Positions 6,386 to 61,797 of a stretch of DNA of 64,000 bases are shown here, piece after piece (the first letter of the stretch is position 1; each line of letters opens with the position of its first letter). Source of the DNA: Eutreptiella sp. 'Long Island Sound 2002'. Lineage: Eukaryota > Protista > Euglenida. The translations under genes were made by a program, and so were the position numbers. The stretch spans positions 31,434,001 to 31,498,000 of the forward strand of contig OZ038379.1 of NCBI GenBank assembly GCA_964036045.1, read 5' to 3'. Below the pieces are notes generated by a model that made no database searches, was not told where the DNA came from, and saw only the letters and a list, made by a program, of their open reading frames with translations.

Positions 6386-6553
6386 GGACCAATGGTGGCC
6401 AGGCCTCAATGATCAATCATGTCGTCTGGTTGGAGACCGTCCAGCCCATTGCATATGGCATCAACCTCGGGCCTGCTGCCATCTTCCTGGCAGCCACTAT
6501 GTGGGCCTGCGACGGCATTTTCCGTCCTTATGTGAGTGTGCGGATGGATGCAG
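6386..6553 (+). CDS. EamA/DMT transporter exon 1 (possible start ATG at 6409)
   Basis: Acceptor ttag|gg. Encodes MINHVVWLETVQPIAYGINLGPAAIFLAATMWACDGIFRPYVSVRMDA, which fits the first EamA helix (G..AI..AA..W...G). Donor g|gtcgtt (phase 1) matches exon 2. Other GT donors at 6532 and 6592 are phase 0 and do not match. Confidence 0.75.
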
Positions 6554-8447
6554 GTCGTTGCTGGGATGCACATGGGATGAATGGGATGCAGGTGAGGACA
6601 GTCGCTTGCGCCTGAACATGACGCCCTGCCTTGACTGCAAGCATACCGAAAGCATCACAGTCATGAAGCTTTTGTGACGCTTTTGCCCCCTTCTTCCCTT
6701 TTCAACATCCACTACGTACTCGCGAAAGGAATTTCCAAAGGCCAGTAATGTGAAATGCAGAGATCTAGATGTCATCCCCCCGTTGATGCCCTGCGCTTCA
6801 TGCGATCAGGCCAGGGCGCAAGGGGCATGCATGCGGGCCGGCCGGCCGGCCGGCCGGCCAACAAGGCAGCGAGCCAGGCTGTCAACAGCGAACCAAACTG
6901 GACATGTGGGTCTTGCCCACATTGCCAGAGGTAGGTGGCGAAAGATACTGGAAATGGAGGAGGAACGGAAGCATGAATCTTCCAATTCGCTGCTGTATGT
7001 TGTGTGTTCACAGGAGCGCAGCCAATGCAGACGTAAAGGCAAAAAGTGGAGTGACAGTATAGGGAATGCCGTGCAAGGAAGTGTACACACAGTGCCAAGG
7101 TTTGGACATGAGCAACAACCCGAACCATAGTTCGGTGGGCTTTTTCCACACACACCCATTTTCTCTTGGCTGGAAAATGACTTGAATTGTATTGATGCCA
7201 TCCATATCATAAGAGTTTGTGTGCAAGGGAGTTGTGGAAACGCTGTTTCCATGCCTGTTGAGGGGGTGCGGCGTATGTAGTGTGTGTGCAGCGGTAGTGT
7301 GCACACAATGCAATGGCTACCCCCTAGAGCAGGAGTGTACATACTACTCCCCCGTAGAGTGTACTGAGACGGTGTAGAGTAAGAGGAGCAGTGGAGTGAC
7401 TATATCGGGTGACACGAAAGAGTAACAATATGGGGTGACACTGACAGTACAGATTGACATGCAAAGTAAGACAGTGCAGAGTGACAGTGCAGAGCGAAAG
7501 TGACAGTGCAGAGCGAGAGTTGTCACTTTCACGTACTCTGTCACTGCTTTACTGTCACTCAGTGATAGTATGATTGAGACTCCAGCCCCCTCAAAAATTT
7601 TTTTGGCCCCAGTCTTGAACCCTTGTCATCCAGAGTGCACCTTGTCTGAACCCCTGTGGCAGGGGCACCTGCCAATATATGCTGGCTGATTCCGGTCCCC
7701 TCAGGGTTCCGTTATTGACGGTTTACTCTGACGGCAGTTTGAGAAATGTAGTTTGTAAAAACGGTGCTGTGCCGATGGTGAGTGCAACATTTTTATGGCA
7801 GCGACAGGGTGCACCAATGGCTTGCTTCGGTTGCTCGGGTGTGCAGTTGCGTGTTTGCAGCAGTCGCGTCCTCCAGTTCATCACTGACATTGTGCAAGTG
7901 ACAGCCAGGCAACTGGGACAAGATATGGCTCCTGTGACCACCGGGGCAGTGGCCAGGCTGTGGTGCCGATGTGCGTCCTGCGATGTTCATACTCGTTTGA
8001 AATCATGCGGCACCGGAACCCAAACACATTGGCCTTGTTCTTGAGGTCATTCCAGGATTGCCTGGGGATCAGGGGCAGAAGGGGTTGCACGATTGGGGGT
8101 GAGAGTGCAGAGCAACCGCATAGCGTGACGCTTGCGGTCTATGATATTGTCACTCAACGAGTGCAGTGGATGATGCCCCGCACCCATCCGCTGCCCAGGC
8201 ATGGGTGTTGTCCCCCCGCCCCCTCTCCGGAACCCCCCATCCGAACCTTACTGACCGCCCGACATTTAGTGGAGGGCGAATTTCTTTGGGCCATTTTTGG
8301 TCCACAAACTTTTCGGTCCCAGAAACACCCCATTCAAGCACAGGCCTGCCCCTGGCCCAGCCCCAGGGCTTTTGGAGACAGTTGCAGTCGACCCCCCCCT
8401 CGACACATTTCGTGTTGTGGAGCACAGGACCGTTCTCTCTCCTGCAG

Positions 8448-8537
8448 AGGCGCTGGTGGCGTGGGAGCACGTCATTAGTCTACTGCCGCTCCTGCCCCTG
8501 ATCCATCACTATTGTATACGGAATCGGAAGGCGTTGG
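8448..8537 (+). CDS. EamA/DMT transporter exon 2
   Basis: ctctctcctgcag|ag...ttgg|gtatgc; 90 nt, phase 1 to 1. Encodes (E)ALVAWEHVISLLPLLPLIHHYCIRNRKAL(G). Confidence 0.85.
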
Positions 8538-8681
8538 GTATGCCCCACTGCCGTGCTCCTCTGTGCCTGTGCGGGTGCCTGCCATGGGATGTGTTGTTAG
8601 GCACGCTGCCCCTGCCCCCAAACACTGTTCCCGCAGCCCTCCTCGCCGCACCGCATCCAGGAATGTGGGGATGAAGTGTGT

Positions 8682-8712
<31 letters not shown>

Positions 8713-9648
8713 CATGTGTTGTGGTGCAGACGCAAGGCAGGTGCGCCCCCTCCCCCTGGGCCAGCACGGCCTTGTCTGAGCACGGCCTAGTCTAGGCGGC
8801 CCCGGTTGACCGTCGTTTTTCTGACCCTACTTTTCGTGGTCTAGAATGTGTTTATGAGCCGGTCACAGTGGGAGAGCGGTCGCTGCTCATCACGCCATCG
8901 TGCTGAGACTGCCCTGCACACAGGGGATGCCCAGCTGGAGCCCTTCACCCCCTCCTCCTCCAAAATCTTTAGAAGGTTCGGACCACATTTGGGCCAAATT
9001 TGACGCCAAAGGCGCCGGCAACTTTTTTTTAGCATTTGGTGGGGGGCAAAATTTCGTTCTTACCTCAAGTGTGTATACCCAAAATGCTCAGAATTTTATG
9101 GGGAATCCAAATATGTATGCAAATATGAAAATTTTTTCTGGCCCCTGCCCTCCCCCCTCCGGGCTCCCAAACCTGGCTGTTGAGACTGGACGCCCCGGGG
9201 GGTAAAAATATTGTGTTTCAAAGACCCCACATATGTGTGTTCAAAATGGTCAGTGCTACAAGGGGATCATTTTGAGGCATGTATGTTACCTGGGACCCCC
9301 ACGCCCCCCCCCCCCCTCTTAAGAGGCCAAAATGTTTAAGGGGTGTCGGGGTCAAGGGCTGCACCTGGGCACCCCCCATGTCCCCCCCCTTCTGTTATGT
9401 GTTAATGTGGGTGTCGGCAAATGGTGCTGCCACGGGCCCAAACCCCGCAACAACCGCCTGCCTGTGGGTTGCGCGCAGGGTACCCCTGTGTGACGGACGT
9501 TGTCCTTGACCACGGCCGTGCTTGCGCCAGAACGGGGGTTCGCTCGCAAATGCTGGGAGGCCTCGGGGGAGTTGCCCTTATCTTTGTCGCCTGTGCCCCT
9601 CATTCTGCCGTCCGCCCCCTCTTCCCCTGCCCGTACCCGTGTCGTCAG

Positions 9649-9829
9649 GGTACAAGCTGTGGGCCTGTTTGTTCGTGATTGGCATTGCTGCCGACGCCGT
9701 CGCCAACACCTTGGTGACAATGGGGTACTCGTTAGGGCATGTGGCCCTTGTGGCGCTGCTGCAGCAGTCACAGCCTATCTTTGGCTTGGCTGGGGCCTGT
9801 GTGGCCCTTCGGGAGGACGTCCACAGCAG
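9649..9829 (+). CDS. EamA/DMT transporter exon 3
   Basis: gtcgtcag|gg...agcag|gtagcc; 181 nt, phase 1 to 2. Encodes YKLWACLFVIGIAADAVANTLVTMGYSLGHVALVALLQQSQPIFGLAGACVALREDVHS, including the EamA-type Q..QPIF...A...L.E motif. Confidence 0.9.
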
Positions 9830-10659
9830 GTAGCCTCCTGATGAAGGGTGCAGGGCTGATGCCTGGGGCCGCATCCCAAAGGGGAGTCAGAGGTGTCTCC
9901 CCCGTGTGGATCCCCCAACCAACCAGAGGATCCGTGAACACTGCTCGCCGAATGCGCCGGACAAGCCCATTTGGCTCCAGAGCTGGTCCAGAGCTCGTCT
10001 CCATAGAGGTGGTCCGCATCAATGCGCCGCAGGCTGTGCTGCCAGGGTCAAGACGGACCCCAAAGGCGCTCAGAGAGGGCTCCAACATCAGCACATGGAC
10101 GAACTCCACCGGGTCACAGATCTGAGTCACAACGGGGCAGAATTCAATGACAAAGGGGTTTGCATATACTGCGACGGAGTACATTTCTACCATAGAACAA
10201 ATGTATTACAGGGGGGGGGGGGGGTGGAAGAAAAAAAAATGCGCGCATGGAAAACAATTAGGCCCCCCCCCCCACCCTCTAGGGGTTGCCTACGCAAAAA
10301 AGGCCGTCGCACCATAATTATAGCATTTGGAAAAAATTTTATCCAGGGCCAATTCTTGAGGCAGAAATGGAATTCTTTGCACCAAACTTCCCTTTGCACA
10401 TGGCATGTACTGAATTGTTTGAACCCATTGATCATTTCAAACTTGTGCTTCTGGTAGAGGTTATTTGTGAGGGTGCTTTTTTTTGCTTCTAGGGACCAAT
10501 GTTGGTACAAGGATTGAATTCTTTGCATCAAATTAGTGAATGTGTTTGCATTTCCCTTTGGCACATGGCATATAAAGAATTGTTTAAACCTATTGATGCA
10601 TCAATTTCGATATGGTGCTTCATCATTTGGATTAGGGGAGAGGTCAACTATAAGTGTGT

Positions 10660-12580
10660 TTTTGCTTTGCATTCCAGACATGTCATCCTCTTCTCTTTCT
10701 TCTCCGCCGAACATTGCATGGGCGAACCGCACCGTGGACGGGTGGAATTGCATTTGTGGGGAGCGGCTATTGGTTTTGGACGGTCCGGACACACAACAGT
10801 TTGCTGCTCATTGTTAGGGTCGGAAACACCGGGCAGGTACAGCCCCTCCGCTGAAGCCCAAACGCCAATTGGCTGTTACACAATTTTTCGCTGCCGCCCC
10901 CCCACGGGTCACGGAGGAGGTGCCCCCTCCGATAGAGAGCGATGGGCAAGACGAGGTTGCAGCAAATGACCTAGAGACATAGGGTATTGCTCCTCCCCCA
11001 GCCAGCAACGACAAGTGCATGGGAGCCCTGCCCTTGGGTATTCCCAATGCCAATGCTTTGCGTGGCAAATACCCCGTGATGCGTCATGCAAATGAGAAAG
11101 TCCACTAGAGGCACGTGGATGGCATGGGGATCGTGTCATTGGACCCTCCATGTACTAGAAAGGCACGCTTTTGGTGATTCTAGTGAGAAATTGCCTTGCA
11201 ACCCGTGCTATGAGGTGCCACGCAATAAAACACTCTGCAAATGGATGTGTGAGGAACGCAACGCTGATTCCAGCACGGAACACTTCAAACCGGGATTCCT
11301 CGATTTGGCAAAGCGCGCAAACGCTCTTCGTGCCGACAAGAATACCGCAATCAAAGCACTTCGCCGTGTCTCGGATGTTTGCGAGACTCTAGTGCAAAAG
11401 TGCGATGCACACAAGGCTTTGATCTGCGCAATCGGTGCCGACGATCGTCCCTTGGCATCACGCCGCGCTGCGCGCCTCATTGCCGCTGGGCAAAGTGTAG
11501 CCGCTGTATTGGAAGAATTGTCGAAAGCAATTCAAACCCGCTCTTACAATGAGACGGATCGTGATTTGGCGTGCCTTGTTGCTATTGGCATTGGTGGCAG
11601 CCGCGCATTGTGTGCTTTGAATCGAGCTGGACGCTTACCCTCCGAGGACGCGTTGAGAGAACGCCTCCGCTTGGACCCCCCATTGCCAAACAACCCCCAA
11701 CAGTAGAGTTCATCGTCTCGCGCTTACCCAAAGTGGAATGTCCTTTGTTGTGGGACATCTTGGTGGATGAGATCTTTTTGGAGGCCTTGGTTGGTGTTGA
11801 TCGTCGTTGCCAAGCATCGGGAATATGCACAACGTGCTGCCCCGAGGCCAAATGGGACGTTCCGGAGGAAGAGAATGCTATCGTCCAAATGGGGTTGACC
11901 ACTTGGCAAAAGCAATTATCAACCCAAAAGAGCGCAAAAGAGAAAAAGCGCGTGCAGGAGAAGCGCCATAAATTGAAGGGCGAGGTTGCACTGCAACATG
12001 AGATCCTCGCAAAGGCAGAGAAGAAAGCAGCACGTCGGGCAGAGAAAAAAGCAGCAAAAAAGCAGCACGCCGGGCAGCTAAGACTGAAGACCGAGAAGCA
12101 AAAGCAGTTAGGGAGGCACAGGACAAGAAAGACAAAGACTACTAGCCACGGAGCAGGTCCGAAGGTAGCGAAAGCCACAGCAATAGCATCGGCAGCGGTA
12201 GTAGTACAAGTGGCAGTACGAGTACCACCAGCAGTGGCAGCAACGGGAGCAGCAGTAGCAGCATTAGCAGCAGCAACAGCGGCAACAACAAGAAACCAGC
12301 CAAAAAGAAGGCAGCAACTAAGAAGGGCAAAAAGCAGGCAATAGCTTCCGAGGCTAGCGATGGCAGCCGCAGCAGTAGTAGCAAGAAGCCAGCGAAAAAG
12401 AAACCAGCCGTCGGCAAGGGCAAGAAGCAAGCCGTGGCTTCCCATGGTGGGAAGGCCAAGAAGCAGTAGGTAGCGGCATAGCAGTAGGCACAACAACTCG
12501 AAACGCAAAACGACTCGAAACACGAAACGTCGCAACATGCGAACCGAAACGACTACATCACGAAAATGGGCACCCTGTGA
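10660..12580 (+). mobile_element. Decayed, truncated DNA transposon with a P-element/THAP9-like transposase (copy 1)
   Basis: N-terminal Zn finger WNCICG...FAAHC*GRKH. Central RSYNETDRDLACLVAIGIGGSRALCALNRAGRLPSEDALR. After a frameshift, DILVDEIFLE...GIC (first catalytic acidic motif), then a Lys-rich tail. Subterminal cgaaac repeats and an end ...gggcaccctg at about 12578. Confidence 0.6.
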
Positions 12581-13199
12581 CACAGTGGGTCAGGCAGGTT
12601 GTTGCCTGAACCTCGGGAAATGGCTGAGCTACTTCTAACCGAGGGAGTAACGCCCCTCCTCCTTAACCACAATTGAAGGGTGAGACTTCCCTACCGCGCT
12701 TTGCATGTTGAGCCGGGAACGTAGTCTTCACTATGATGGAGTGATGGTGTCAAAAGATCAACGTACATTATTTTTGCCTTGAAACGGCTTTGTTTGGTAA
12801 AATTTTTGGTCATACGTGGAAGGAAAAAATTTGCTAACCCCCCCCCCCCCTCACCCTCTGGGGATTGGCTGCGCAGAAAAAACTGTATGCCATTCCGAGG
12901 AATCCCCCCCCCCCCCCGATGTATTGTACGTGATGCCTTGCATGACTAGCCTGCCCGGATGCATCATTTTAAAGACACCGGGGGTCTTCTGGATAGCAGA
13001 AGATGGCTGGGCCCTAAGGGACGTGGTCCAGAACCCCCCCCCCCCCCCCACCACCACCGCACAAAATCTCCCCCCTCCCCATACTCTCTCTCACAATGCA
13101 GATGGCAGAAGCCACAGGCGACACCATCGCCCCGCGGCGAGAGGAGAGATCACCAGACAGAAAAGAGCAAAACTTATCGCCGCGCGTTGATATAGAGAA

Positions 13200-13740
13200 C
13201 GGTGTTACTCCAACCCACCTGTGGCACATGCCGGGGTAGTGTTCTCCCCCCCCCCCCCCCCCAAGATTGGAATGCAATATCAGCGCATGCTCCTTCAGTT
13301 CACTCAACACAAATGTTTACCTGTTATTATTGCAGTTGCAAATGATTTTGAGGGAATCACACGAGTACATGGTGTCACGATAAAAAGTGCAACAAAGACA
13401 ACAAAGCGCACATAACATGCGGTGGTGACAGCACCAAGAGTATCATGTATAGCACAAGAAGGCAGAATGGGCTTGAAGCCCTCAGCCAATGCGTGATCCT
13501 TTACGGGATCATTGGATAGGGCCTGCTTCATGAACAACGAACAGTCTGCTTTGCGCTCTTTACTGGCAGCGGCCTGGCTTCATGGGCATCCCCTCTTATC
13601 GCTCTTCACTGGCAGTGGCCCGGCTTCATGGGCATCCCCTCTTATCACTTCGAGAGTCGTCGAACCCACGACATTGAGGTCTCTTCTTAATCCTTCGAAA
13701 TCAATTGCCAGCAGCAGTCATAGTAAGTGAAGAAAAACTT
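13200..13740 (+). mobile_element. Diverged fragment homologous to the 5'/ORF1 region of LINE family A
   Basis: 13645-13730 (atcacttcgagagtcgtcgaacccacgacattgaggtctcttcttaatccttcga...gccagcagcagtcatagtaagtgaag) aligns by eye with 16170-16260 (atcgcttcgagaatcggcggatccacggcaccgaggtctcttctcaacccttcga...gccagcatcagtcataagtgaag). Confidence 0.7.
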
Positions 13741-13760
13741 TTGCTCCAAATAGCATAAGA

Positions 13761-13832
13761 GGCATGGACGGTCTAGTGGTATGCGCCATGGATGGCACTC
13801 GTCGTTGTAGGGGGTTCGAACCCCGGTTTGTC
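13761..13832 (+). pseudogene. tRNA-derived pseudogene or SINE head
   Basis: A-box-like ggtctagtggtatg and B-box/T-arm ggggttcgaacccc. The acceptor and anticodon stems do not pair properly. Confidence 0.55.
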
Positions 13833-14369
13833 CGTCTGTCCACGGGCCCGTTGGCGAGCCCCCCGCCACCGCCCCCTTCAGCATCCCCCTCCACCACCGG
13901 TACCGCCGATGGATGGGTGGCGTGTCTCGTCCTCGTAGTTGTTTCTTTTATCTTTAGAATTTTTTGCATATGGTCCAGTCCAGGCAGGCATCAGAGCACG
14001 CATAAAAACAAGGCACCAGGCACAACACACCTGCAACAGTGCCCCCAGTCACCGGTACCGCCGGCCGACGGGAGCCGCATCTCCTCCTCGTATTCCCCTT
14101 GGGGGAATCGAACCAGCGTCTTCAAGGCAGCGACTGGCCGCACGACCGCTGCAGTACCCGGCCAAAAACCCATCTTAGGAGCTGTTACCAAAAGGGGCTT
14201 TAATTGGGCCCGGAGAAAGTTGATATGGACAAATTTCGAAGCCCTCCCTCGTACCAAATATTTCCTTCGATTTTAAGGATTCTTTGTGCCATATTGTGTC
14301 AGGGGGTGCCATAAGGACACTCACCCTTTTTTTTTCTTATGCCATCAATTCTCTAATGTTGAAATTCCG

Positions 14370-14457
14370 GCAGATCCTAATATAGCTTAGTTAGTAGTTG
14401 TACTAGCTTCTAATCCCAAGGGTCCTGGGTTCAAACCCTGGTGTCTGCAATTTTTTT
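14370..14457 (+). pseudogene. tRNA-Arg(TCT)-like pseudogene or SINE head with a T7 terminator
   Basis: gcaga...tagcttagttagtag (A box), loop cttctaa (anticodon TCT), ggtcctgggttcaaaccctgg (T arm), tgtctgca, then ttttttt. An insertion in the acceptor stem and an unpaired anticodon stem indicate it is non-functional. Confidence 0.6.
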
Positions 14458-15221
14458 AGCTTCGCTTTTTTGGTCTTTTTTATGTCTGCATGTCTGCATG
14501 TTTGCATGTGCATGCACCCCCGGGATATGGATGCTACGGGACCCTTTCAGTCAGTCACAAGCACACATACCCGTTAAACCCCTCCCCCCTGCTCTCAACC
14601 TCTTCCCCGAAGCAATCAGCCCCAGACAAGGAGCCAAACAAAAGTCAGTGAAACACATGGGGCCACTGATAGCACCTCTTTGCAAATTTTCTTTTTTCTT
14701 TTTTTGGTGAACCATCCTTTCTTGGTTAAACAGGTGCTGTGTGATGGCTGGGTGCCTGGGCAGGCAGGTTTCACCTTCTTGCCCTACTGGGGGGGGGGAG
14801 GAGAGGACGCCCAGGCACCCAAGGGGTCCGAGAGAGCAGGGTGGGTTATAAAAATAAAAATTTGTAAGTTCCTCTCCTGCCCTCCCGCCTGGGCCACCCC
14901 CGCCTTCTTTGCCCCCTACCTTCGGGTTCCACACCTTTCTGGACTTGAACAGGTTAGGGATGTTGAAGACATTGAAATTTTTTGTGTTGTGTCTGTGTCA
15001 CTGAAGGTCATCTCCTTTGAACTGCCCCCTAGGGGAGGGAAGGTAACATAGAGATGAGACGCGGTGTCGATTGACACTGTGTTGTCTGTAGGTCCGCATG
15101 ACCGTCGACGTTCACAACGAATGTGGTGTGCATCTAGCAGGCTCAGCGATTGGCAAGTGATTTGCAAGTGGTGATACCATTGCTCACTTTTGTGTCGTGT
15201 TGTCTTCGTGCCATCCGCACA

Positions 15222-15745
15222 GGAAATAACAGGAACCATGCAGAGCCCACCAGGAAACAACAACAACCATCCAGAGCCCACCAGGAAATAGCAACCATCC
15301 AGAGCCCACCAGGAAACAACAGCAACCATCCAGAGCCCACCAAGGAATAACAGCAAACATCCAGAGCCCACCAGGAAATAACAGGAACCATCCAGAGCCC
15401 ACCAGGAAATAACAGCCACCATGTAGAGCCCATCAAGAAATAACAGCAACCATCCAGAGGTCACAAGGAAATAACAGGAACCACCCACAGCCGACCAGGA
15501 AATAGCAACCATCCAGAGCCCACCAAGAAATAACAGTAACGATCCAGAGCCCACCAAGAAATAACAGCAACCATCCAGAGCCCACCAGGAAATAGCAGGA
15601 ACCTTCCAGAGCCCACCAAGAAATAAGAGTAACCATCCAGAGCCCACCAAGAAGTACTCGCAACCATCCAAAGCCCACCAGAAAATAACAGCAACCATCC
15701 AGAGCCCACCAAGAAATAACAGCGACCATCCAGAGCCCACCCGGA
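15222..15745. repeat. Minisatellite, 28-31-bp unit ccatccagagcccaccaggaaataacagcaa, about 17 copies
   Basis: Tandem copies are directly visible. A two-unit relic occurs at about 62180-62240. Confidence 0.95.
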
Positions 15746-15889
15746 ATCCACAATGAACATCCACTAAGAATCAACGGCAAGGGGCCTCATACCAAATTTT
15801 TCCTTCATTTCTAAGGAGCAATACCAATTTTTTACCCCTTTCATTTTGGTCATCCGAAAAAAAACCTCTTAAATTAAAGGCTCTGTTGG

Positions 15890-18800
15890 TAGCTCTCAGC
15901 AAGCCATCGTAGCTCTCAACAAGCATCGTCATGACATCGTGATTGAGGGAGGGATAGGCTATGTAAAGCTCAGAACTGCATCAGGAAAATACAAGAATCG
16001 TACATATTTCACTCCACAGGTCTGTGGAGAATACAGATCACCAGTAGGAGCCCAGCTTTGGGGCAAGACATCGTTATCTTTGACATTGGCCCAGCTTTCC
16101 GGGCAAGCTCCCTTGCAACTGTCATATCTCATAGCCCATGGCGAAAGCTTTCTTTGAAACAAATTTCCTGTCATCGCTTCGAGAATCGGCGGATCCACGG
16201 CACCGAGGTCTCTTCTCAACCCTTCGAGATGAGTTGCCAGCATCAGTCATAAGTGAAGCACAAATGTCCATACCGTCTGCGTTGGACAAGCCTGCCAAAT
16301 TTGTTTGCGATGCACTGAGATGGGTGGCAGCACGTGGAAAGATTATTCATATAGCCGGCATCTCCAAGACTCTCACACCATATGGGATGCTCCTCACAGC
16401 GTCTGTGGATATTCAAATGGACACGGAAAAGACCTCTCTGCACTAAGTCCCACTACCCATCTTGAAATCACCAGCGCTTCTCTACAATGTGGAACAACAG
16501 CCAATGGAAATACGACTTGTGCATCAATGGGATCCCACATATCGTGCAATTACAAAGACATCAAAAATTTCTTGCAGAAGCACCCCAAACCGCTGGATGC
16601 GGACATAGATAAAGTCTCAGCTACAGTGATCAAAGAGCATCAATATGACCCAATTAAAGACCACCTTCCGCAATATCAGCGGAAAGCATGGGCAGAATGG
16701 CAAAAGCATGGTCACAAACAGATTCTTGAGCACATCATGGCTCTACCAAAGTTGCTCCGGCGAAGACCACATCGAATTTGACAGCAGAAGATCACCACCA
16801 GCTGAGTTTGCATATTCTGTCATGGCTTGCTGATCATGTAGCTCTGCCGCATCGCAGGACTCTACACAAATTCAAAGGACACATCCCATCGATCTCAATT
16901 GAAAATGCCAGAGAACAGCTGATGAACTCCATTCTGTTTATGAACACAGCCAATGATCTCGATCGGATTCACGGAGCAGGAGCAATCTCATGGATCACAG
17001 CTCCAACATATGCACTCATGTTACCAGATAATGCACATCCAATGTCATCAGATCACATCAACTTGCTCTCTCAGCCACCAGCAAATCTTTCGCTCATTTC
17101 ATCGGTGGATGATGAATCACTTTCAGCCTCGAGATCACGTCTAGCAATGAGCTTATTTCCAGATATCGATTCGGTCTCTCGGGCAGAATTTGAGCGCGTG
17201 CAAAAAGAGAATGCAGAGAATCGCAAGCAGGCACAAGCACATCGACAACAAATGGAGGCTCTCTCACAGGAAGTTCAGAAATGGAGCAACAAAGCTTTAC
17301 TCCTGTCCACGACCAAGGATGATCACACCATCACTAACCTACCTTCTACCATGCCTCATTTGGTTTCACTAGTCCAGAAGTCACATGAGTGGAAAGGTCC
17401 CCCTCGAGATGCGGTGTCTCAATACATCGATCGGTACCTCCCACCCCATGTAACCCCAGTCCCCCCCCCCCCCCCATGCACAAGCATTACTTAACCATGT
17501 TACCGATTCTGGCAACTTTTTTGGCAGTCACTGGCACAGTGAAAGATTTACCACATTACCGATGGCTTTGGACACGGAAGAACCACGGCTAGACACCAGC
17601 GTGAATCTTTTGAACTTTTGGCCCGAATCCCCGCCGAAAACTTATACACATGAAAAGGAAAGACAATCAGATCGAGACACCGCATCAGGAACTAACCCCT
17701 CTGTGACAAGCAAGACAAAACATGTCACATTTTTGGATGTAATGCAACGCTTTCCTGTTTGGATAAATGATCAATCTAGTGAACACAGTGTTTAACAAGC
17801 CAGAAGTGTTCACATGCACTTGTATACCCATGGCATACATATGCCACGATTTCCTCATTCAGATCTTCATGGTCAATGGAGCCAATTGGAATGCATGGAA
17901 TTGACAGATTCCATAAGAAAAGCCATTCATCAGTTTCTCGAGACCCCTCCGACCCCAAAACGAGACGCAATACAAAAAGAAATCAAAAAGCCCACCACCC
18001 CTTCACCTTCATCACATATTACACCAAGTCCACAGGTTAGGGTACACCACATATTACACCACATCCACAGATCCAACAAAATACCCCATCAACATTTTAA
18101 TGGGACGGTCAGCATACGATGACCCACCACAAACCACAATCACAGCCCGCATTTTAGGCACAACACTGTGTCCTATTTTTGGGAAACATTTATGTTCCAT
18201 CCGAGATGATGTTGTAAAAGCACCAAAGTCATTCACCCTTTTTGGTGTGGCAGACGAAGGAAAAAAATTCACTGAGATCGTTGGTGCAGTAAATATGTTT
18301 GGATGGCGGGTGAACTAGAAAAAAGCCAACAGACAACCATGGACTCCACGGGTACCTGGCATCATTTACAAAACCCCAACTGCTGCCAAGGAAACACAGA
18401 AAGAGAGCACAGGAAGAAAGCACAAGCATCACAAACGATCAAGATCACGAAGCACCTCCTCAGCAAGCAGTGACAGTTCTGTTGACAAGGACAAACACAA
18501 AAGGTCACGAGAAAGACGAGAGAAAAAGAAATACAAAAGATCAAAGTGACGATCAAGATGATGGTCAAGAAGAAAGCACAAGACAAGCATAGAAAGGCTG
18601 GAACGTCACTCCGCAACACTCACATTCAGCACCTCCAACCCAATACACACTAGGAACTCAACCCCCACCCACCCAACCTACACAAACATATCAAACTCCG
18701 AGACATGCATCACAGACCTCGCAGAATGGTCCTGATGGGCAAGGATGGAGAGGGGACTCCCAATGGAACTGGTGACCCCTTGTCTAAAAACATGGATCCC

Positions 18801-25504: not shown

Positions 25505-25579
25505 AGTTGCAATTCCACTTGCGCTGGCTGCAGTTGTTGGCCTGTTCCTCATGATGTGGCCGTATGCACGAGAGGCTAG
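25505..25579 (+). CDS. EamA/DMT transporter exon 4
   Basis: tttgttctcag|a...gctag|gtatga; 75 nt, phase 2 to 2. Encodes (R)VAIPLALAAVVGLFLMMWPYAREA, the last helix of EamA domain 1. Confidence 0.85.
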   Translation, partial: SCNSTCAGCSCWPVPHDVAVCTRG

Positions 25580-42520: not shown

Positions 42521-43130
42521 CCCGAGACACAGCCCGAGACGGCGCCCCACCTGTGGGCCTGCTCGGCTCAATCGCACGAATGGGGGCCAGCCCGCCGGCG
42601 CCTCGCAGCGTGGCTCGACCAGAAGGTGGGGCCACGGGCGGCCCCAGTGCGTCACCAGCTGTGGGTACCGACTGTGCTGGAGCAGTGGGCGGCAGCCCTG
42701 CGGACCCCCTCCATGCAGCTAGCCCACCTGGAGTGTACGGGGCCCCACTCGCTGGGCACGGAGTTCCTCCGCCACGTCGTGGAGGAGTCCATACGGATCT
42801 GGTACGCCCACGCCAAGGCGCGTGCCACACTGCTGAAGGCCCGCCTGGGCCCGGGCAGCACGATGGCGTGGGCGTTGCAGGAGCTGCGCTTGCACCAGCA
42901 AGCAGAAAGGGAAGGGGTGCAGCGGGAGCTCCTGGAATAAGCGCGGTCGCCAGAGGCGAACTCACCAGGTCTCCCCGACTCCCCCTTCCCCTGCCGAGGC
43001 CTACACACATACGCACAGCGCGCACACAACACACACAGCCAGCCCGTTTACCTGTACCCGTGGGTAGACATCCCGGCCTTTTGCCTTTTGGTAACAGCGC
43101 CTTCGGCACACCACACCACACCACACCACA
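42521..43130 (+). mobile_element. LINE family B, short 3' fragment B2
   Basis: ETAPHLWACSAQSHEW...WALQELRLHQQAEREGVQRELLE*, the conserved 3' UTR (cccgtttacctgtacccgtgggtagacatcccggcc) and a (CACCA)n tail. Confidence 0.9.
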
Positions 43131-49100: not shown

Positions 49101-49975
49101 CTCCGGCGCCCCTTCTCCTTCCTCCCCCGAGTGACCTACCGGGACTAGTGCCAGCTCTCCCCAACGGCGCTAAGCGACTGGTTGCCTCCATACCCGCACG
49201 GGCCGGCTACGAGGCCCGGTGGGAGTGAACTACACATCGGGGAGTGGACTCCCCCGGTTCCATAGTGACAAGCGGCGCCACATAACGGCGCACCGCATGG
49301 ACAACATCCCTACGATGACTGTCTTGGCACACCGGTCCTCCTACCAAGACACGGTGTTGGACACCACGTGTCGCCCCTGTGGGGGCGCACCCCGAAATGG
49401 CGCCCCCCCTCTGGGCCTGCGCGGCCCAGTCCCATGAGTGTGAGCCAGCTCGGCGGCGGCTTGCGGAGTGGCTCAATCAGAAGGTGGGGAAACAAGCGGC
49501 CCCGGTGCGCCGCCAGGAGCCGGCCGTACTGGAGCAGTGGGCGGTGGCCTTGCATTCCCCCTCCATGCAGCAGGCCCACATGGAGTGTTCAGGGCCCCAC
49601 ACGCTGGGGACAGAGTTCATACGCCACGTAATCGAGGAGTCCATCAGAGTTAGGTACACCCACGCCAAGGCGCGTGCCATGTTGCTGAAAGCCCGCGTGG
49701 CCCCAGGCAGCACGATGGCGTGGGTGTTGCAGGAGCTGCGCCTGCACCGGCAGGCGGAGAGAGAGGGAGTACAACGGGAGCTACTGGGATGACGGCACTC
49801 GCCAGGAGGGAGACAACTATTTTTCCCCGACTCCCCCTCTTTCCGCCGAAAACCACACACTTGCACACGGCGCACACGCTACACACACGGCCCTCCCGTT
49901 TACCTGTACCCGTGGGTAGACGTCCCGGCCATTGCCTTCTGGTAACAGCGCCTTCGGCACACCACACCGCACCAC
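43131..49975 (+). mobile_element. LINE family B, near-full-length decayed copy B3: Pro-rich ORF1, APE, RT (WVDD), RNase H, CCHC, (CACCA)n tail
   Basis: APE: VWLNVRG...LIVAEAQ...VVTDTN (45240-45670). RT: NPRGITISSHVSK...ITDLAKFFNV...TPQGTIQG...MWVDD (WVDD at 47256-47267). RNase H: VAVDAG...GEA...VPD.E...TPSHW...NAQVDAA (48700-49070). CRPCG...HLWAC follows, then the 3' UTR and tail. Multiple stops and frameshifts. Confidence 0.9.
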
Positions 49976-50775
49976 ATGCGCTTAGTCTGGGCCGGGGGTG
50001 TACCAAGCCCACGTCCCTTCTGGCATGGGCACCTCCCAGGAAGGGGAGGCCATGATCCTGTTGTCCTATGTCCGACGGCTAGCAGCAGAGTCCGGGGTAT
50101 AGTGGCTTGTGCCGGACTCAGAGGCAGCTATGGGGGCCCTCTGCACTTACCAGCAGGGAGGTCACTGTGGGGATAGCAGATGCCATCTGTATGCCACGCA
50201 CCTGGGGGGCAGCCGTGTGGTCCCCACCTCTCCAATCAACGTGATTACCACGCCGTCGCACTGGATCACGGGCCTCAATGTCCGGGTGGATGCAACGACG
50301 CCAGAGCCGCCTGAAGTGGACCTAACCCGGCTCCTACGTCGTTCCTTCTCTTTCCTCCCCCGGGTGGCCTACCGGGACTAGTGCCAGCTCTCCCCCACAA
50401 CGCTGCCTGACTGGTTGTACAGCTAGGCCTCCATTCCGGCAAGCGTCGGACATGAAGCCGATTGGGGGCCTCACTACACGCCGGGGGGAGGTCTCCCTCT
50501 AGACTGCAGGAGCTGCGCCTGCACCTGCAGGAGGTGTGCCTGCACCACTAGGCAGAGAGACAGGCGGTTCCGCGGGTTCTACTGGGCTAACTACGATAGC
50601 CTGGTGGTGAGCCTCCCGTTCTCCCTCTTCCCGCTCTCCACCCCTTTCTAAACACACTCGCACACGGCGCGTCACGACACGCATAGCCATCCCGTTTACC
50701 TTTCCCCGTGGGTAGACATCCCGGCCTTTGCCCTTCGGTAATAGCGCCTTCAACACACCACACCACACCACACAC
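49976..50775 (+). mobile_element. LINE family B, internally deleted 3' copy B4
   Basis: RNase H C-terminal half (GEAMILLSYVR...VPDSEAAMGAL...TPSHWITGLNVRVDA), 3' UTR and (CACCA)n tail. Confidence 0.85.
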
Positions 50776-53040: not shown

Positions 53041-54990
53041 AGCGGCCACCGGCACGGAGAGGCACCTAGTCTCCCCCTGGACAATGTTGCCTAGAGGTGT
53101 GCAATAGCCCTCCCACCCGTGATACCGGCTGGCTCGGCGAGACACCCTGTCTCCCACTGTTGGGGGCGGGGGGATGGAGAAAATTTTGCGTGGATTTTTT
53201 TCCCGTACCCCCCCCACCCCTCCAGGGCTTGGCCCCGAAAAAAAGCTGCCACCCCATGTAGGAATTTTTTTCGCAAAGAGGATTTTCTTGTTGTGTGCTG
53301 CTTGAACTTGCACGTAACCTTAACTTTGCTACACCGTGTGCAATTGACACGTGAACTACTACTTAGGTAACAGTAATTGGTTGGGAAGTTGAATTTATTT
53401 GCATGCTTGCATGGTTTTAGAGAGCCACAATCGATTGGCAGGGATAAGACAAAAGAGTGAAAGAAAGAGGGAATTGGGCTAGTGCACGGGGAGGGAGGGA
53501 GAAGAAAGGGTGAGAGGGAGATGGTCGAGTTAACAATAATCCACTAAGAGGTTTGGGTGCCATTGTGTGTGTTACTTACTATTTCTTGTCGCAAACCTTT
53601 TAGATGTCCTCGGTGATCAACATCGCATGGGGCTAACGGGATGCCCACAGGCGGACATGAAGCGATAAGTGGCCGCTGGGGATAACCGGCAACAAGGTGC
53701 GTTGGCCGGTAATGGGGTCACTGCCTAATGCCGTTCGAAACTCAAAACGACTCGAAACGGCCTTACACGACCGGGCCCCTTGTTTGGCGGGCAAAACGTT
53801 GGCAAGCAGATTAAGGTTGGTAGGACATGGGGCTACAGCTGGGGAGGTTAGGACGAACGATGTGCGTGCGGTGTAGCAACCCACTCGCGGTTGACTATAC
53901 ATGTTTTGTAGTCATGTAAGACCCCCAGAGAAAAATATTTTTGCAGTGTGCGCATAAGAACGGCATACTGCAACAATGTACACCATCCACACACATACAT
54001 AGACATACAAACACACCAACGCACAAACCGTAGCCTCACTGAAAAACCAATTTTTTTTTGGCAAGCCATTGTGGGTTAGCGGTCATCAACCAACATGCGA
54101 CAAGGCAATGGACATGACATCGTGGGATACAGAACGGCCAAAATGGACATTAGTCTGCCTTGTCCTTCATTGTTGCTGGTTCGGTTTCTTGCCCCAAATA
54201 GGTGTATTGCCTTGTTTGGGACTCTTTCCCACCGATAAGAGGCCAGGGCGGGGCGCTGCACTACAGCCGGACCTAACCGGGGGTCTTTGTGCCCTTAAAC
54301 ACAAACGCGACCCATAATATCCTCGTTGCACCTTCCAAATCAAAAGAGGTGTGATACAGTTCAAGACATTTCAGGTTTTGGGGTCCGGAAAAAAATGTCA
54401 CGCAATTTTTTTTATCCCCCCCCCCCCTCCGGGGGTAACCCCCCCGAAAAAAAGCCGCAGACTTGTACCGAGAATTTTTTTTGCCCGTGTCCCGTCTCCC
54501 TGCTCCCACTAGCTGGTGAGCCTACATTAGGTACGAGGCAACTATCCCCCCTCCCCTTCCCCCCCTACGAGCCTTTGCACAGGCTCTAATTAACCACTAT
54601 TCTAGTCACTAGTCAAATCGAAAACAAACACGTTTATACGTTTATTTTCGAAAAAAACGCCCGGTTTTAGGAGAGAATCGCTGTTTTTTGGTGCTTATTG
54701 ATGTTTATGTGTGTTTTCACATATTGTTGCATGGTGTCATGGTGTCATGGTGTCAACGCCAGGTCCCACCTCCCGCAGGAGGCAGTTGCCCGCGGTCCCG
54801 GCCGGACCAGAGTGGCACAATACCGCAGCAAGTGCAACACCCTGTGCGACGCTCCGCGAACCCCCTCCCCCCTTCCCCGCACTATCATTGTCCACGCCAC
54901 ACGGCATGGGCAGCTACGGGGCCGACCACACAGCCGGGCCCCCATGCAGGTCCCTGTGCACACAGGGCCCCCAATGTATTCAGTTCTGTC

Positions 54991-55340
54991 AAAGTAATAA
55001 ATTTTGCATGGGCACACACCCAATGCATTCAGTTCTCCGAAAAGTAATAAATTCTGCATGGGCACACACCCAATGCCTTCAGATCTGCCAAAAGGAATAA
55101 ATTTTGCATGGGCACACACCCAATGCCTGCAGTTCTGCCAAAAGTAATACATTTTGCATGGGCACACACCCAACGCCTTTAGTTCCGCGAAAGGCAATAA
55201 ATTCTGCATGGGCACACACCCAATGCCTCCGGTTTTGCCAAAAGTAAGAAATTCTGCATGGGCACACACCCAATGCCTCCGGTTCTGCCAAAAGTAATAA
55301 ATTCTGCATGGGCACACACCCAATGCCTTCAGTTCTGCCA
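54991..55340. repeat. Minisatellite, exact 50-bp period, 7 copies
   Basis: aaagtaataaattctgcatgggcacacacccaatgccttcagttctgcca starts at 54991, 55041, 55091, 55141, 55191, 55241 and 55291. Confidence 0.95.
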
Positions 55341-56762
55341 AAAAGCGGCGCGGAGGGTGGACGCACGTCAATCCCCACCTCAGCTGCCACACGTCTTGTA
55401 GCCGCAGCCGGTACACAGCAGCTCGACGCAGCCAACCCCCGTCCCGTTACCAATCCAGGGACTATGGGGAGGAGGTGCAACCCGCACCTCACGTGCCACA
55501 TGGCAAGAGCCCAGGCCGCAGCGGTGGCGCCTTTGCTTGACGCAGCCAGCCCCCATCCCGTTACCAATCCAGGGACTATGGGGGGTGCTGCACCGGTTCC
55601 GGAAGCACCGCAGCACTCCTTCTCAGATGCTGCAAGCACTGCAGCACTCCTTCTCAACTGCTGCAAGTATTGCGGCTCTCCTTCGCTGCCACACTGTAGC
55701 AGTCGTGGAGCGGAGCTCCAGCTGCTGCACTGCAACTTGACACAGTCACCCCTTGTCCCGTTACCAATCCAAGGACTATGGGGGGGTGCTGCCTCCCACT
55801 GCACCCGCCGCACGGCGGGGCCCAGGGCCGCAGAGCTGTCCATAGCCGACCGGCGTCACAGATGCGGTGTGCCTGGGCTCGGGGTCGTTGCAGCAGGGGC
55901 CAAGCCTCGTCACCACCGAGGCCCGGCCGGCCTAGGAAGGGCAGTACACTGGGGCTGTAGGGGGTCAGCCGCACAGCTGTCCCCAGCAGCCGCCGCCGCA
56001 CGGCGGGTCCCAGGGCCGTAGAGCTGTCCATAGCCGACCGGTGTCACAGTTGCGGGGCTCCCAGGCTCAGGCTGACCACACGGCCTGCCAAAAAAAAAAA
56101 ACTCACGCTGGGCACCCAGCCATGGGGACTTGAAACGGGCCATGTCAATTCATGGCCCCTAGTCTCACCGGACGTTATTTCAGCTTGCCCCCGCCCATTT
56201 TCCCCACCCCTTGCCGAAGCCGCCGCACGGCGGGACGGTCCTCTGCATGGTAGCCGCACGGCCCATGAGAGAAGCCAGTGAGTCAGGTGGCTGTTTTTGC
56301 ATCCCAAGTGCCCCGGCCGCACGGCCCTTGGGTAACGTCCGCGGACATATTGTTGCATGGATTGGGGAAGGTTTTGGGTTGCCTCGTTATGCCATTCACT
56401 TGATATTCGTCATTTCGGGTATGCGTCACCTACATAGGGTTCCGTAAAGCAACAATCATACTCGACATCCGGTGCCCACGGACACTTGACCGCTTAAAAC
56501 AAAGAGGTTACGGAAATGTGCCTCTTGGCACTTTGTGATAGCTTGCATTTGTAGGGCCACATTTGAACAAAAAGCTTCAACCCCAATAAACAAAGATCTC
56601 GCTTGTAATTCGGTGCATGTCCGTGAGCAGGAGCAACAATAAATAGACAAAACTTCAATTTCGGTGATTCCTACGTTTCCCCATTCTCCCAGCAGAATTA
56701 TCATCTCTCGTCTTCTTGTTTGTTCACCCTTCAAAACCTCTTTTCCTATATCGCGTCTCGGG

Positions 56763-57395
56763 ATGGGTGGTGAAGTACGGATGCGCCGCCTCGGTCCGGT
56801 TGCACCTGAGGGTGCCGATTGGATGCACTTCAACGATGCCTCGGCCGCCCTCCGGTACCTGCACTCCGAAGACGGTGGGGCGTTGACGAAGTTGGCACAC
56901 ACCTAGGTCATGCGACCTGCCAAGACGGATGGCACATGCGATGGTTGGGTGTTCCCCATGAAGAAGCTGTCGTCTAATGAAGGCGCGCCGGTTGTCCCAC
57001 CTCCATCGTCCTCACGCGCCACCCCCTCCCTAAGTCCTTTTTTTCTTGTTCCCATACGGTGTGCATGTTGTGGCGCAAACATTTGTGGCACCAAGTATTC
57101 ATGTCAGAGGTGCCACACGGTGGTTGATGAGGCGTGCATGACCATGGTTGGATCAAACATGCATTGCTTTGTGTGCACCTGCCGTGCATATGGACAAGAA
57201 GTGTCCTCCATCGACCTGGAATGTCACAAGTGTCATTTCCGCGTGCATCCAGGGTGCACCACAGATGGTATTTGCACCTCCTGCGCTGAGGGGCGCCGGC
57301 CGTCTACCCCCCCCCCCCCCCCAAGAAACGGCGGTTCAAAAAAGAGTGGCTTCTTACCCGGTCTTGGCTACGGTATGACGCTAGCAGGGACATGA
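56763..57395 (+). pseudogene. ORF with tandem DC1/C1-like Cys-rich domains, interrupted by one in-frame stop
   Basis: CACCGANICGTKYSCQRCHTVVDEAC...CFVC...LECHKCHFRVHPGC...CTSC. The upstream in-frame part MGGEVRM...WMHFNDASAALRYL is separated by TAG at 56904-56906. A pyrimidine tract precedes the ATG. Confidence 0.45.
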
Positions 57396-58199
57396 TGTGG
57401 TGTCAGCAATACCCGCAACTTGGCCACTCTGTTCCCTTCGTCCAAGGTACTTCGAACTTCATGCTATGCTCCCTTAAGTATCATCAACGGTCGGGCACAC
57501 GCTGTGTGTCCTTTGCCTTGTGGCAATCAGTTGGTCGCTTGACGTCAGGGGAATTTGGTGGGATTATACTATATTATAAAATAAACAGTGATTGGCATCA
57601 TCCTAGAATAAACAGCATGGGATTTGACTTGTACCAAAACTGAACAAATCCATTGTGCAAGGAACCATGAATAAACCACACTCAGGAAAACATGTTTGAT
57701 AAAGATACAGACATATCTGAACATGTACTAGAGAATTATACGGAACTCAATGGTACCAGCCACATGGAACAAAGTTGTGTCCTATGAACGCGCAATGGAA
57801 GGATTAGGTAAAAGGAGGCAAGCATAAGCGGAAATTGCCATGTTTGTAAACAATTTGTCAACCAAGAGGTAATAAAACAACAAATTTTCGCCAAAATAAA
57901 CAAGTTGCTAGTCACTAGTCAAATGGCCTTTGAATAGTATTTAATTAGAGTCTGCCCCCGTAGCCCCGGACGGAGCCAGGTGTATGGTTATATGACCTCC
58001 CCCCGTTGGCCATAATCCGGGGGGCCCTAGTCCCCGCCGCCGCCAGCATGCCCCCAGGGGGCATGAGGTGGCGATCATGAATGAAAGTGAACCGGGGGAG
58101 TGCGCAAACGAGACAACGTCGGGCGTAGGGACTTCCCAAGAAGGGGAAAATCCAACCCCGTTGCTCTATATCTCTGCCTTGCGGGCGCCATGTACCGGG

Positions 58200-58884: not shown

Positions 58885-59370
58885 GTGCATGCCACTAGGG
58901 AGCAATGGGCAACTGGATTCCTTCAGTACACTGCCACGGTGCTAGGAAGCCGTGGGCAGCATGATTCCTTCAATAAATTTCCACACTAATGGGGAGCAAT
59001 GGGTGGTGGGACTTATCCTACACATTCCTACATTGATGGGGAGCTGTGGGCAGCGGGAACCCTTTAGTACGGCGCCACACCGCTGGGGAGCAGTGGGCAA
59101 GGGGACTCCTTCCACACACTGCCATGTTGTTGGCGAACAGTGGGTAGTGGGAATCCATCAGTACACAGCCACAGTGTTGGGGAGCAGTGGGTGGTGGGAC
59201 TACTTTCGTACACAGCCACACTGCTGGGGAGCTGTGAGTAGCGAGATTTTGTCAGTACACTGCCACACTACTGGGGAGCAGTGCGTGATGGGACTCCTTT
59301 AATACGCCGCTACAGTGCTAGGGAGCAGTGGGGCGCGGGCTACCTTCAGTGCAGTGCCACATTGCTTGAG
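58885..59370 (-). repeat. Old, diverged array (about 10 copies) of the same 47-bp satellite, in inverted orientation
   Basis: One unit, cagtacactgccacactactggggagcagtgcgtgatgggactcctt, aligns ungapped to the reverse complement of the 40.9-kb unit at 33/47 positions by my hand count. Confidence 0.75.
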
Positions 59371-59699
59371 AGTAGTGCGGAGTGCTAACCACGGCCGTGG
59401 AGGGTGCCATGACCACACAGGGGTGGGCTGTGATGCTCTCGGTGTGCGAGCAGCCGCGGGCGACCTCCCAAGTGACACCCGCCTCCACCGCCTACTGGTG
59501 AGCTTGTTGGGTATCCACGTGTAGGTGGAGTCCCCCGTGTATGCATGCTTGTAGGAGGACTTGCGAGGGACCATGCTCTGACGGCTCCAAACCACGGGCA
59601 TGAAAGGATCCACAATGCTGTGGCTGGGGTACCAATACTAGGAGTGGACCTCCCAAGCACCGCACCCGCCACTCACCATTACAACTGTCCGACTGCCCG

Positions 59700-61370
59700 A
59701 ACCATGGATAGAGCTCCAGGAGGGGGCAGTGGCACTCTTTGGGTACCGAAACCGGTGCCTATCCCATAAGTGCACCCCAATAGGAGACCCTTGTACATGG
59801 CTCTCCACACCCTGAATGCGCTGTCATCAGGGCTAGACCCAGCCCTGAGGATCCTGCGCTCCTGAGCACTTTGGAGGCACCGTAACGCTGCACCGCCACA
59901 AGGCCCCCACGGAGTCGCCCAGGTGCATGCGATCCCGGACGGAACTAGGCTTATGGTTCCATGGCCCGCCACCGCTGGCAACCATCATCGGGGCCATCGT
60001 GGCCACCGATGCCGGGACCACCCAGGTGGGGATCGTCATGGCGCTAGCGTACGAAAGTGCTCCGGGAGAATACCACACTAGGGTGGCCTCCGGGGTGGGA
60101 GCCTCCCAATTAAGAGGGGGAGACCATGGCGCTGTAGCTTTGTGTCCGCCAACTAGCGTCGTAGGAAGGGGTGTACTGGGTGGTGCCTGACTCCGAGTCC
60201 GCCATAGGTGTGCTATGAACGTACTAGGAGGCCGGCCACTGCGAGGATGGCATACACCACCAGTATGCACACACCCTAGGGGCCCAATGCCTCGCCTCAA
60301 AGGTGCGATCAACATCGCCTCGCCTCAAAGCTGCGATCAACATCGTGGTCACCCACTCTCACTGGATCACCGCCATCAATGTGCATGTGGACGCCGCAAC
60401 CAAGGAGGAGCCGCTGGTGGACCTCAGCTAGATGCTACGACGGCTGTACGCGTTCATACCGGCGGCAAAGTTTCGGGACCACAGCCAACTGGCCCCGCCC
60501 GACTTGCAGGGTTGGCTGCACGAGCAGGCGGCCGTCCCTACAAGGGTGCAATATGAGCACCCGGGGACTAAACCATGAGTGGGGCCGGGGCTTGCGACTA
60601 GACTGGTGTACGAGTGACCAGCAAAGGCACTTGGTGGCCCACCGGATGCGCAACCTCCCGACCATGACCGCAATGTGCAGCTTTGCACTCGTTGCCTGCT
60701 GTACGACGGCTGCCCAGAAACGGCCCAACACCTCTAGGAGTGCCCAATCAGTCCCATGAGTGGCGGCTGGCCCGCCAACGCCTCCACACGTGGTTGAGCA
60801 CTGATGTGGGACCCAGGCGTCCCAACTGCAAGGCCGGTTGTGGGACTCGGGGTTACCGGAGCAGTGGTCAGCAGCCATCACGACGCCGTCCATGCGGACG
60901 GCGCACATGGGGCTGGCGGGACCGCACAACATGGGGACAGAGTTCATCCGGCAAGTGCTGTCGGAGTGGCAGCAGGTGTGGTTGGCCCATGCCAGAGCAA
61001 GAGACGGCCTCATCAAAGCCCAAGCAGGGCCAGGAGGCACGATGGCGTCGGTGCTACGGGAGCTCCAACTGCACCAACCGGAGCGGCAAGGCGTCCCTCA
61101 GGCAGCCCTAAACTAAGACTGCCTGGCCCGGGGGGGGGGGGGGGGGCTAGCCCCGCCATCCCAGGTGCGCCACACACTACACACAGCATGCGCTGGGACA
61201 CACAGCCCTCCAAGCTTGCAAACTCCCGCGTGCAAGACCATCCCGGCCATTGCCTTTCGGAAACAGCGCCTTCGGCACCCCGCACTACACCACACACCAC
61301 ACAATACAACACAATGCAGCACAGCACAGCACAGCACAACATAACACAACACAATATATCACGCAATACC
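59700..61370 (+). mobile_element. LINE family B, diverged 3' copy B6 with a (CACAN)n tail abutting the exon 8 acceptor
   Basis: LGLWFHGPPPLATIIGAIVATDAGTTQVG...YHTRVASGVG, GTEFIRQVLSE...LRELQLHQ, and the tail gccattgcctttcggaaacagcgccttcggcac(cacaa/cacag)n. Confidence 0.8.
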
Positions 61371-61409
61371 ACAAGCTGACACAACCAACCTCCTCTCTCT
61401 TTTCTGCAG

Positions 61410-61515
61410 CTGCCATCCCTGACCAATTTATTTGACCCGGAGTATGTCCGCACGCCTCTTGAGACCCCACAGATTATTGGTGCTCTGGTGTTGACGGCAT
61501 CTACGGCATTCCTTG
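61410..61515 (+). CDS. EamA/DMT transporter exon 8 (could instead read through to TAA at 61574)
   Basis: Strong acceptor cctcctctctcttttctgcag|ctg, phase 0. Encodes LPSLTNLFDPEYVRTPLETPQIIGALVLTASTAFL, with the Q.IGA.L last-helix motif. Donor g|gtatgc. Confidence 0.8.
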
Positions 61516-61684
61516 GTATGCCATGTGCTGTTCTATGCTCACGGACGGCTGTGACTGGTTGGCAGGTCTCTTAAGCCTGCACTGTCCGCTGACATGTCAA
61601 ATACCTCGCTCTGTGCATCGCGTGCCTGTGCGATGCTGGGTGAGGCTTACTACTGGTGTGCGTAGCTTGTGCACTGACCTGCAG

Positions 61685-61797
61685 CTTTGCAGGGGTCTGG
61701 CAGCGCTGATGACGCTGCTGAACCTCTGTCTGCTCCGCCATGCACTCCTGCCAGACGTTTGCGGATCCATACACCTGGAGGACTGGCAGGAGCCTGA
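61685..61797 (+). CDS. Candidate terminal exon 9 of the EamA/DMT transporter (hydrophilic tail)
   Basis: ctgcag|ct is phase-1 compatible with the exon 8 donor. Gives ALQGSGSADDAAEPLSAPPCTPARRLRIHTPGGLAGA*. No family motif supports it. Confidence 0.35.

Follow-up and report, generated by a model that had tools for sequence, protein, structure and literature searches.

The window analysed here is a 64,000-nt stretch from the euglenid Eutreptiella sp. 'Long Island Sound 2002' (C2:31434001-31498000 in a 2.28-Gb assembly of 2,317 contigs), and it contains no N. On its + strand, to which all the exons and introns described below belong, it very probably carries a single-copy nuclear gene for a ten-helix euglenid transporter of the drug/metabolite transporter (DMT)/EamA type, with three introns swollen to 8.8-22.7 kb by repeats. 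The coding sequence to the first stop (62078-62080) measures 1,239 nt (412 aa), is divided among at least nine short coding exons of 75-245 nt each, and occupies 2.2% of a 55,672-nt span, in agreement with the figure of about 2% given by a first-pass annotation of the same DNA. That annotation had called the gene hidden, which is apt insofar as a prokaryote-style list of open reading frames (ORFs) cannot show a spliced gene; the word means nothing more.

The gene was tested with single exons or with natural homologues, and the support for the product encoded in the window is therefore exon by exon. Exon 3 (59 aa), used as the query in a representative protein search, returned P0001 (the window's own ORF), P0002 (289 aa, 72% identity to exon 3) and five further matches of lower similarity. 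With P0002 as the query, a word search yielded nine proteins, and every named one is euglenid. Sources of the homologues are Euglena gracilis for P0002 and P0011 (EG_transcript_22829 and 10158, respectively), GGOE01000389 for P0010, Rhabdomonas costata for P0005 (RCo017582), Logan run ERR11260134 for P0008 and Eutreptiella gymnastica for P0012 (UniRef cluster A0A7S1I548_9…, an incomplete identifier). When eight euglenid EamA homologues were compared with the window by tblastn, each gave eight collinear + strand pieces that fall, in order, on the proposed exons (6409-6552, 8444-8542, 9648-9830, 25503-25592, 34377-34538, 35698-35820, 38583-38720 and 61386-61544; E values 1e-25 to 1e-5), and no credible match was found elsewhere in the window or in the genome. 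A chance origin of the exon matches is excluded by these E values together with the collinearity.

The coding part of exon 1 (6409-6553) starts with the ATG at 6409, comprises 48 codons plus 1 nt, encodes helix 1 with the motif MWACDGIFRPYVS, and ends at the donor CAG/gtcgtt; residues 1-48 of P0002, P0008 and P0012 align to 6409-6552 by tblastn with E values of 1e-18 to 3e-19. Another donor, at 6529/6530 (TAT/GTGAGT), is in phase but was rejected, since the homologues hold eight residues (VSVRMDA-E) between 6529 and 6553. Intron 1 (6554-8447, 1,894 nt) leads to exon 2 (8448-8537, 90 nt, entered and left in phase 1), where homologue residues 48-80 map to 8444-8542 with 64-73% identity, and intron 2 (8538-9648, 1,111 nt) leads to exon 3 (9649-9829, 181 nt), which encodes helices 3-4 of EamA repeat 1 (EamA E value 8e-4; phmmer match to P0002 with 72% identity, E value 1e-19). 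The first of the very long introns, intron 3 (9830-25504, 15,675 nt), separates exon 3 from exon 4 (25505-25579, 75 nt), which encodes helix 5 (tblastn 25503-25592, 67-75% identity) and is followed by the second, intron 4 (25580-34378, 8,799 nt). EamA repeat 2 starts with helix 6 in exon 5 (34379-34531, 153 nt; EamA E value 0.0076, tblastn E value 1e-20). Beyond intron 5 (34532-35699, 1,168 nt), which is apparently unique sequence, exon 6 (35700-35811, 112 nt) contributes helix 7 as well as a loop whose Cys residues are conserved (tblastn 35698-35820, 46-59% identity), and beyond intron 6 (35812-38585, 2,774 nt) exon 7 (38586-38717, 132 nt) contributes helices 8-9 (EamA E value 0.032, tblastn E value 1e-17). 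The longest intron, intron 7 (38718-61409, 22,692 nt), then precedes exon 8 (61410-61515, 106 nt), which encodes helix 10, ends at the donor TTG/gtatgcca and is matched by P0003, P0005 and P0008-P0012 at 61386-61544 with E values down to 8e-12. Intron 8 (61516-61835, 320 nt) separates it from exon 9 (61836-62080), the start of a poorly conserved C-terminal tail, which opens with the split codon G/GC followed by IHAAKMEAK and reaches its first in-frame stop, TGA, at 62078-62080. The first seven exons, the start of the eighth and the sizes of the three long introns had all been placed correctly by the first-pass annotation.

Three-frame translation of each exon with its flanks showed every proposed exon to be open in the frame demanded by the phases 1,1,2,2,2,0,0, and the seven GT-AG junctions for which these phases had been proposed are confirmed without a gap. 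All eight introns begin with GT and end with AG, and all eight acceptors are CAG preceded by a C/T-rich tract. A CAG acceptor, a pyrimidine tract and a GT or GC 5' end are the published description of conventional introns in E. gracilis (PMC11170887). The eight introns therefore look like conventional (spliceosomal) euglenid introns. Judged by its sequence, the gene is real and intact-looking: its nine exons are all open, and each of its eight introns has canonical GT-AG ends.

The 3' end required correction. After helix 10 the homologues run on as LLG-[IL]-[HY]-A..., and in the window a donor (G/GTATGC) lies at 61515/61516, an acceptor (...tatctcag) lies at 61835, and GIHAAKMEAK is encoded from 61836, with 8 of 9 residues identical to residues 332-340 of P0008 (GIHAARMEAK). 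Together, these place exon 8 at 61410-61515 and the start of exon 9 at 61836. The end point of 61797 that had been assigned to the gene, and the tail assigned to the protein (MPCAV...QVS and stop), fall in intron 8, and if no exon follows exon 9, a product of about 412 aa would replace the earlier one of about 350 aa. Additional exons beyond exon 9 may exist: a potential donor of the GTGTG type (CCG/GTGTGT) lies at 61917/61918, and tblastn with the homologue tails across 61001-71000 detected no further C-terminal exon past GIHAAKMEAK. If intron 8 were instead retained, translation would end at 61572-61574 and the product would have about 350 aa after all. The frame does stay open for 18 further codons past the donor, and alternative splicing has been reported in E. 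gracilis (PMC6366073). We nevertheless consider retention improbable: all full-length homologues continue with LLG-[IL]-[HY]-A, GIHAAKMEAK stands in phase after a good acceptor 320 nt downstream, and nothing in any homologue corresponds to the read-through peptide.

Conservation along the spliced exons is high. In a joint alignment in which the exons were entered as separate rows, the exon pieces line up along the homologues with no indel, leaving one column free per split codon. Of the columns that are invariant among seven full-length homologues, 100 of 104 are identical in the window. Two of the other four are split codons that read as expected (CA/G, Gln; G/GC, Gly) and one is a change from Ile to Val; the last, a Glu, is taken up below. 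Identity is 73% to P0008 and 70% to P0012 (325 aligned residues) and 68% to P0002 (284 aligned residues). The euglenid homologues share with the window the start position, the motifs MWACDGIFRPYVS, GYSLGH-ALVALLQQ-QP, WASETV-GR and LELLTYRQ-IG, and two EamA repeats, and they are collinear with it over exons 1-8 without a gap, whereas none is identical to it, which makes the window's gene the orthologue from another species, and the C-terminal tail differs. They are known from cDNA or protein alone, which makes a comparison of intron structure impossible.

Both E. gracilis paralogues map solely to this locus in the genome, where their best-matching exons show 70-72% identity; the genome is therefore that of a euglenid other than E. 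gracilis. Exon 3 has no second copy in the genome, and homologue residues 288-340 have no other match anywhere in it, which leaves exon 7 with exon 8 as its sole candidate partner. By these searches, the gene is single copy. Its intact frames, canonical splice sites and retained invariant residues argue for purifying selection on the copy in the window, and the searches have so far found this transporter subfamily only in euglenids. The gene looks intact, as the first-pass annotation had claimed.

Assignment to the EamA/DMT family, with two repeats, also holds up. Pfam EamA (PF00892) matches exon 3 (positions 61-115), exon 5 (6-34) and exon 7 (65-105) in the order expected for two tandem EamA repeats, and a genome-wide EamA search in six frames picks out exons 3 and 7 independently. 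The full-length homologues exceed the Pfam threshold with 63-70 bits, five of six of them in two stretches. NCBIfam, applied to eight exon peptides, gave only a 13-bit RhtA match in exon 7. P0008 was modelled with AlphaFold from an alignment of seven sequences; the model is of moderate confidence (predicted local distance difference test score 65, predicted template modelling score 0.67) and has ten long helices, and the exons of the window tile this homologue without a gap. In a Foldseek search, the best structural matches of the model were all DMT transporters, namely LicB (7PAF), YddG (5I20), the triose-phosphate/phosphate translocator TPT (5Y78), SLC35B1, PfCRT and Vrg4, at a probability of 1.00 and template modelling scores of 0.60-0.72. 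Like these solved transporters, the model comprises ten helices in two five-helix repeats. Sequence identity between them and P0008 is only 11-17%, and no PDB sequence matched the family profile at E values up to 1; a substrate can therefore not be transferred from the solved DMT proteins. From sequence and model together, the product is predicted to be a ten-helix EamA/DMT transporter with two repeats.

None of the homologues has an N-terminal extension before helix 1. The missing extension argues weakly against plastid targeting by the presequences usual in euglenids. Elsewhere in the genome, dozens of other EamA matches lie in long uninterrupted ORFs (of up to 500 aa or more), for example at C10:39912106, C25:13111656 and C959:14139-15011. 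Apparently, they are either DMT genes that lack introns or contigs that stem from bacteria, unlike the much-split gene described here.

What fills the long introns is, for the most part, dispersed repeats. The shares given here are lower bounds, because a few dozen candidates were scored per DNA search of the genome against itself: at least 78% of intron 3 and at least 62% each of introns 4 and 7 consist of repeats that are 75-95% identical to copies across many chromosomes. In intron 3, repeats extend over about 10209-14187 and 15885-24195, with copies 76-93% identical on many chromosomes and 13,874 candidates at first look, and an element of about 8 kb carries several + strand ORFs. Some copies of the repeats in intron 4 are 93-95% identical, and this intron also contains an 85/172-nt tandem array at 26523-26970. 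Intron 7 holds a 47-nt satellite at 40853-42523 (35.5 units, 90% matches), an element of about 6.8 kb at 43200-49976 and more repeats at 54572-57956. At 58981-59379, intron 7 has a second array, this one decayed and with unit lengths of 47 and 94 nt, and the repeat adjoining the 47-nt satellite accompanies that satellite at more than 20 other genomic loci. Among the shorter introns, intron 6 has a single dispersed repeat, an older one about 0.9 kb long (approximately 37261-38188, copies 68-84% identical), and introns 1 and 2 showed no dispersed repeat beyond a 77-nt match among 40 scored candidates. Upstream of the gene, the region 1-2866 also consists of dispersed repeats, including a unit of about 0.77 kb (2099-2866) with very many copies at 88-91% identity.

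The first-pass annotation had called these introns transposon-filled. Dispersed multi-copy repeats do fill the three big introns, but no Pfam transposon domain was detected: 29 distinct ORFs from the introns and flanks gave no Pfam match to a transposase, reverse transcriptase, integrase or RNase H. The sole Pfam match among them was a low-complexity artefact in an ORF reading through the 47-nt satellite. Pfam thus lends nothing to the P/THAP9-like transposase that had been proposed at 10660-12580 or to the reverse transcriptase at 47200-47300, and for the ORF at 46673-47656 and its neighbours no Pfam family, RVT_1 included, was matched at E values up to 10. An Rfam search of the whole window gave no match. 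By language-model features, the ORF at 46673-47656 resembles RVT_1 clusters (score 0.95, 161 shared features) and the ORF at 21704-23080 resembles zf-RVT/RNase H clusters (score 0.95); both of these ORFs, which resemble those of long interspersed nuclear elements (LINEs), lie on the sense strand of the gene. In the intron 4 search, matches begin anywhere between 3314 and 4729 and end at 5494 (search coordinates), a pattern of shared ends seen in copies on many chromosomes, and dispersed copies shortened towards a common 3' end fit retroelements that lack long terminal repeats (non-LTR). We treat the identification of the intron repeats as non-LTR (LINE) retrotransposons as a lead only. The elements at 15885-24195 and 43200-49976 may belong to a divergent retroelement family specific to euglenids.

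In the draft catalogue of E. gracilis, 28,337 introns average about 0.5 kb, the longest measures 8,197 nt, and 43% of them are conventional (PMC11170887). The conventional share is 28.2% in Euglena agilis (PMC12501133), so that nonconventional introns make up 57-72% of euglenid introns (PMC11170887, PMC12501133). The chromosome-level assembly of E. gracilis consists of 59% repeats (PMC11252322). At 15.7 and 22.7 kb, introns 3 and 7 are about two to three times as long as the 8.2-kb maximum of a catalogue that is bounded by draft contigs (PMC11170887). Introns of this size are expected for a genome as large as the present one. That all eight introns are conventional is mildly notable and may simply reflect this species. 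The repeat-swollen introns of vertebrates, conifers and salamanders likewise combine short conserved exons, repeat introns of tens of kilobases and about 2% coding sequence; here, in contrast, the host is a euglenid. It is a tentative and rather unlikely reading that introns 3 and 7 are the longest conventional euglenid introns documented, that such gigantism is confined to spliceosomal introns because the ends of nonconventional introns must pair, and that a short ORF upstream of the start codon, shared with two orthologues, may add a layer of translational control.

The 5' end of the gene bears on that last point and on expression. The first-pass annotation had started the gene at 6386, whereas the start codon is the ATG at 6409; position 6386 stands as an exon edge only in that it follows a possible spliced-leader acceptor (ggttAG/G, at 6384-6385), which would leave 6386-6408 as a possible 5' untranslated region. 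The P0008 contig (ERR11260134) is RNA-derived, 1,348 nt long and intron-free, and starts with TTTTTTTTCG, which we take to be the Euglena spliced leader at its 3' end (Tessier et al. 1991, cited in PMC6366073). The lack of introns and the leader at the start indicate that a relative expresses the orthologue as a trans-spliced mRNA, and they lend indirect support to expression of the gene in the window.

A six-codon upstream ORF (6392-6412) overlaps the main ATG with its TGA, out of frame (overlap ATGA). Short overlapping upstream ORFs (5-6 codons) also occur in an orthologous cDNA, L009 (50-67, and 21-53; overlap ATGA), and in contig L011 (392-412; overlap 7 nt), and the more distant L012 has none. 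The overlapping upstream ORF may serve translational control as a conserved element, or its recurrence may be due to chance. In L011, positions 374-381 read ATTTTTCG, like the 3' end of the spliced leader, 25 nt 5' of the start codon, and the contig continues further upstream. L011 may be chimeric, or ATTTTTCG may be a genomic relic.

Several observations weigh against an intact, expressed DMT/EamA gene with transposon-swollen introns. (i) All of the support for the junctions comes from gap-free protein collinearity. (ii) Exons 3, 5 and 7 score 20.1, 17.0 and 14.9 bits singly, each below the Pfam gathering threshold of 28.2 bits, so that membership in the EamA family is carried by the homologues. 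(iii) The transposon nature of the repeats is read from copy number and language-model resemblance, with no domain match behind it. (iv) The tail after 61917 is Cys- and Trp-rich and differs from the hydrophilic tails of the homologues, which makes the last exon or exons uncertain. (v) An invariant Glu before helix 10, in the motif PLE-x-EQ of exon 8, is Pro in the window (PLETPQ). This replacement is the sole non-conservative change at an invariant site.

The last two observations would also suit a silent or decaying gene, whose exons remain readable while repeat load or promoter loss has switched it off, and so would the fairly young insertions in intron 4 (copies 93-95% identical). At about 70% overall identity to orthologues, a decaying copy would be expected to show stops or frameshifts, but the nine exons have neither, every one of the 16 splice sites is canonical, and 100 of 104 invariant residues persist. 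Moreover, all phototrophic euglenids sampled have kept this family, of which the locus is the only copy here; decay or silencing is thus decidedly improbable. Scarcely credible is an assembly artefact that wrongly inserted or expanded repeats in the 22.7-kb gap, or in another long intron, of a truly compact gene: the long introns are indeed mainly high-copy repeats and satellite, sequence that assemblers misplace, but the window is free of N and sits 31 Mb into a contig of 193.5 Mb, unique stretches part the repeats, the three introns are alike, and exon order, strand and phase are kept.

The locus is thus an ordinary eukaryotic gene with repeat-swollen introns, as expected in a large repeat-rich genome. 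In the mechanism that we propose, insertion of dispersed repeats, at least some of them like non-LTR retrotransposons, would have swelled introns 3, 4 and 7 and thereby left about 1.24 kb of coding sequence scattered across 55.7 kb. Transcription would presumably run through the repeats, after which the ordinary spliceosome would remove the introns and the pre-mRNA would receive the euglenid spliced leader as its cap. The protein would work by alternating access, as other DMT proteins do, and carry a small polar solute. The analysis supplies a well-supported gene model for an apparently unannotated 2.3-Gb euglenid genome, and it illustrates that homologue-guided, exon-by-exon mapping recovers genes even when they are 98% intron. 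The gene also offers a test locus for whether the euglenid spliceosome can handle introns of more than 20 kb that are full of retroelement-like repeats on the sense strand.

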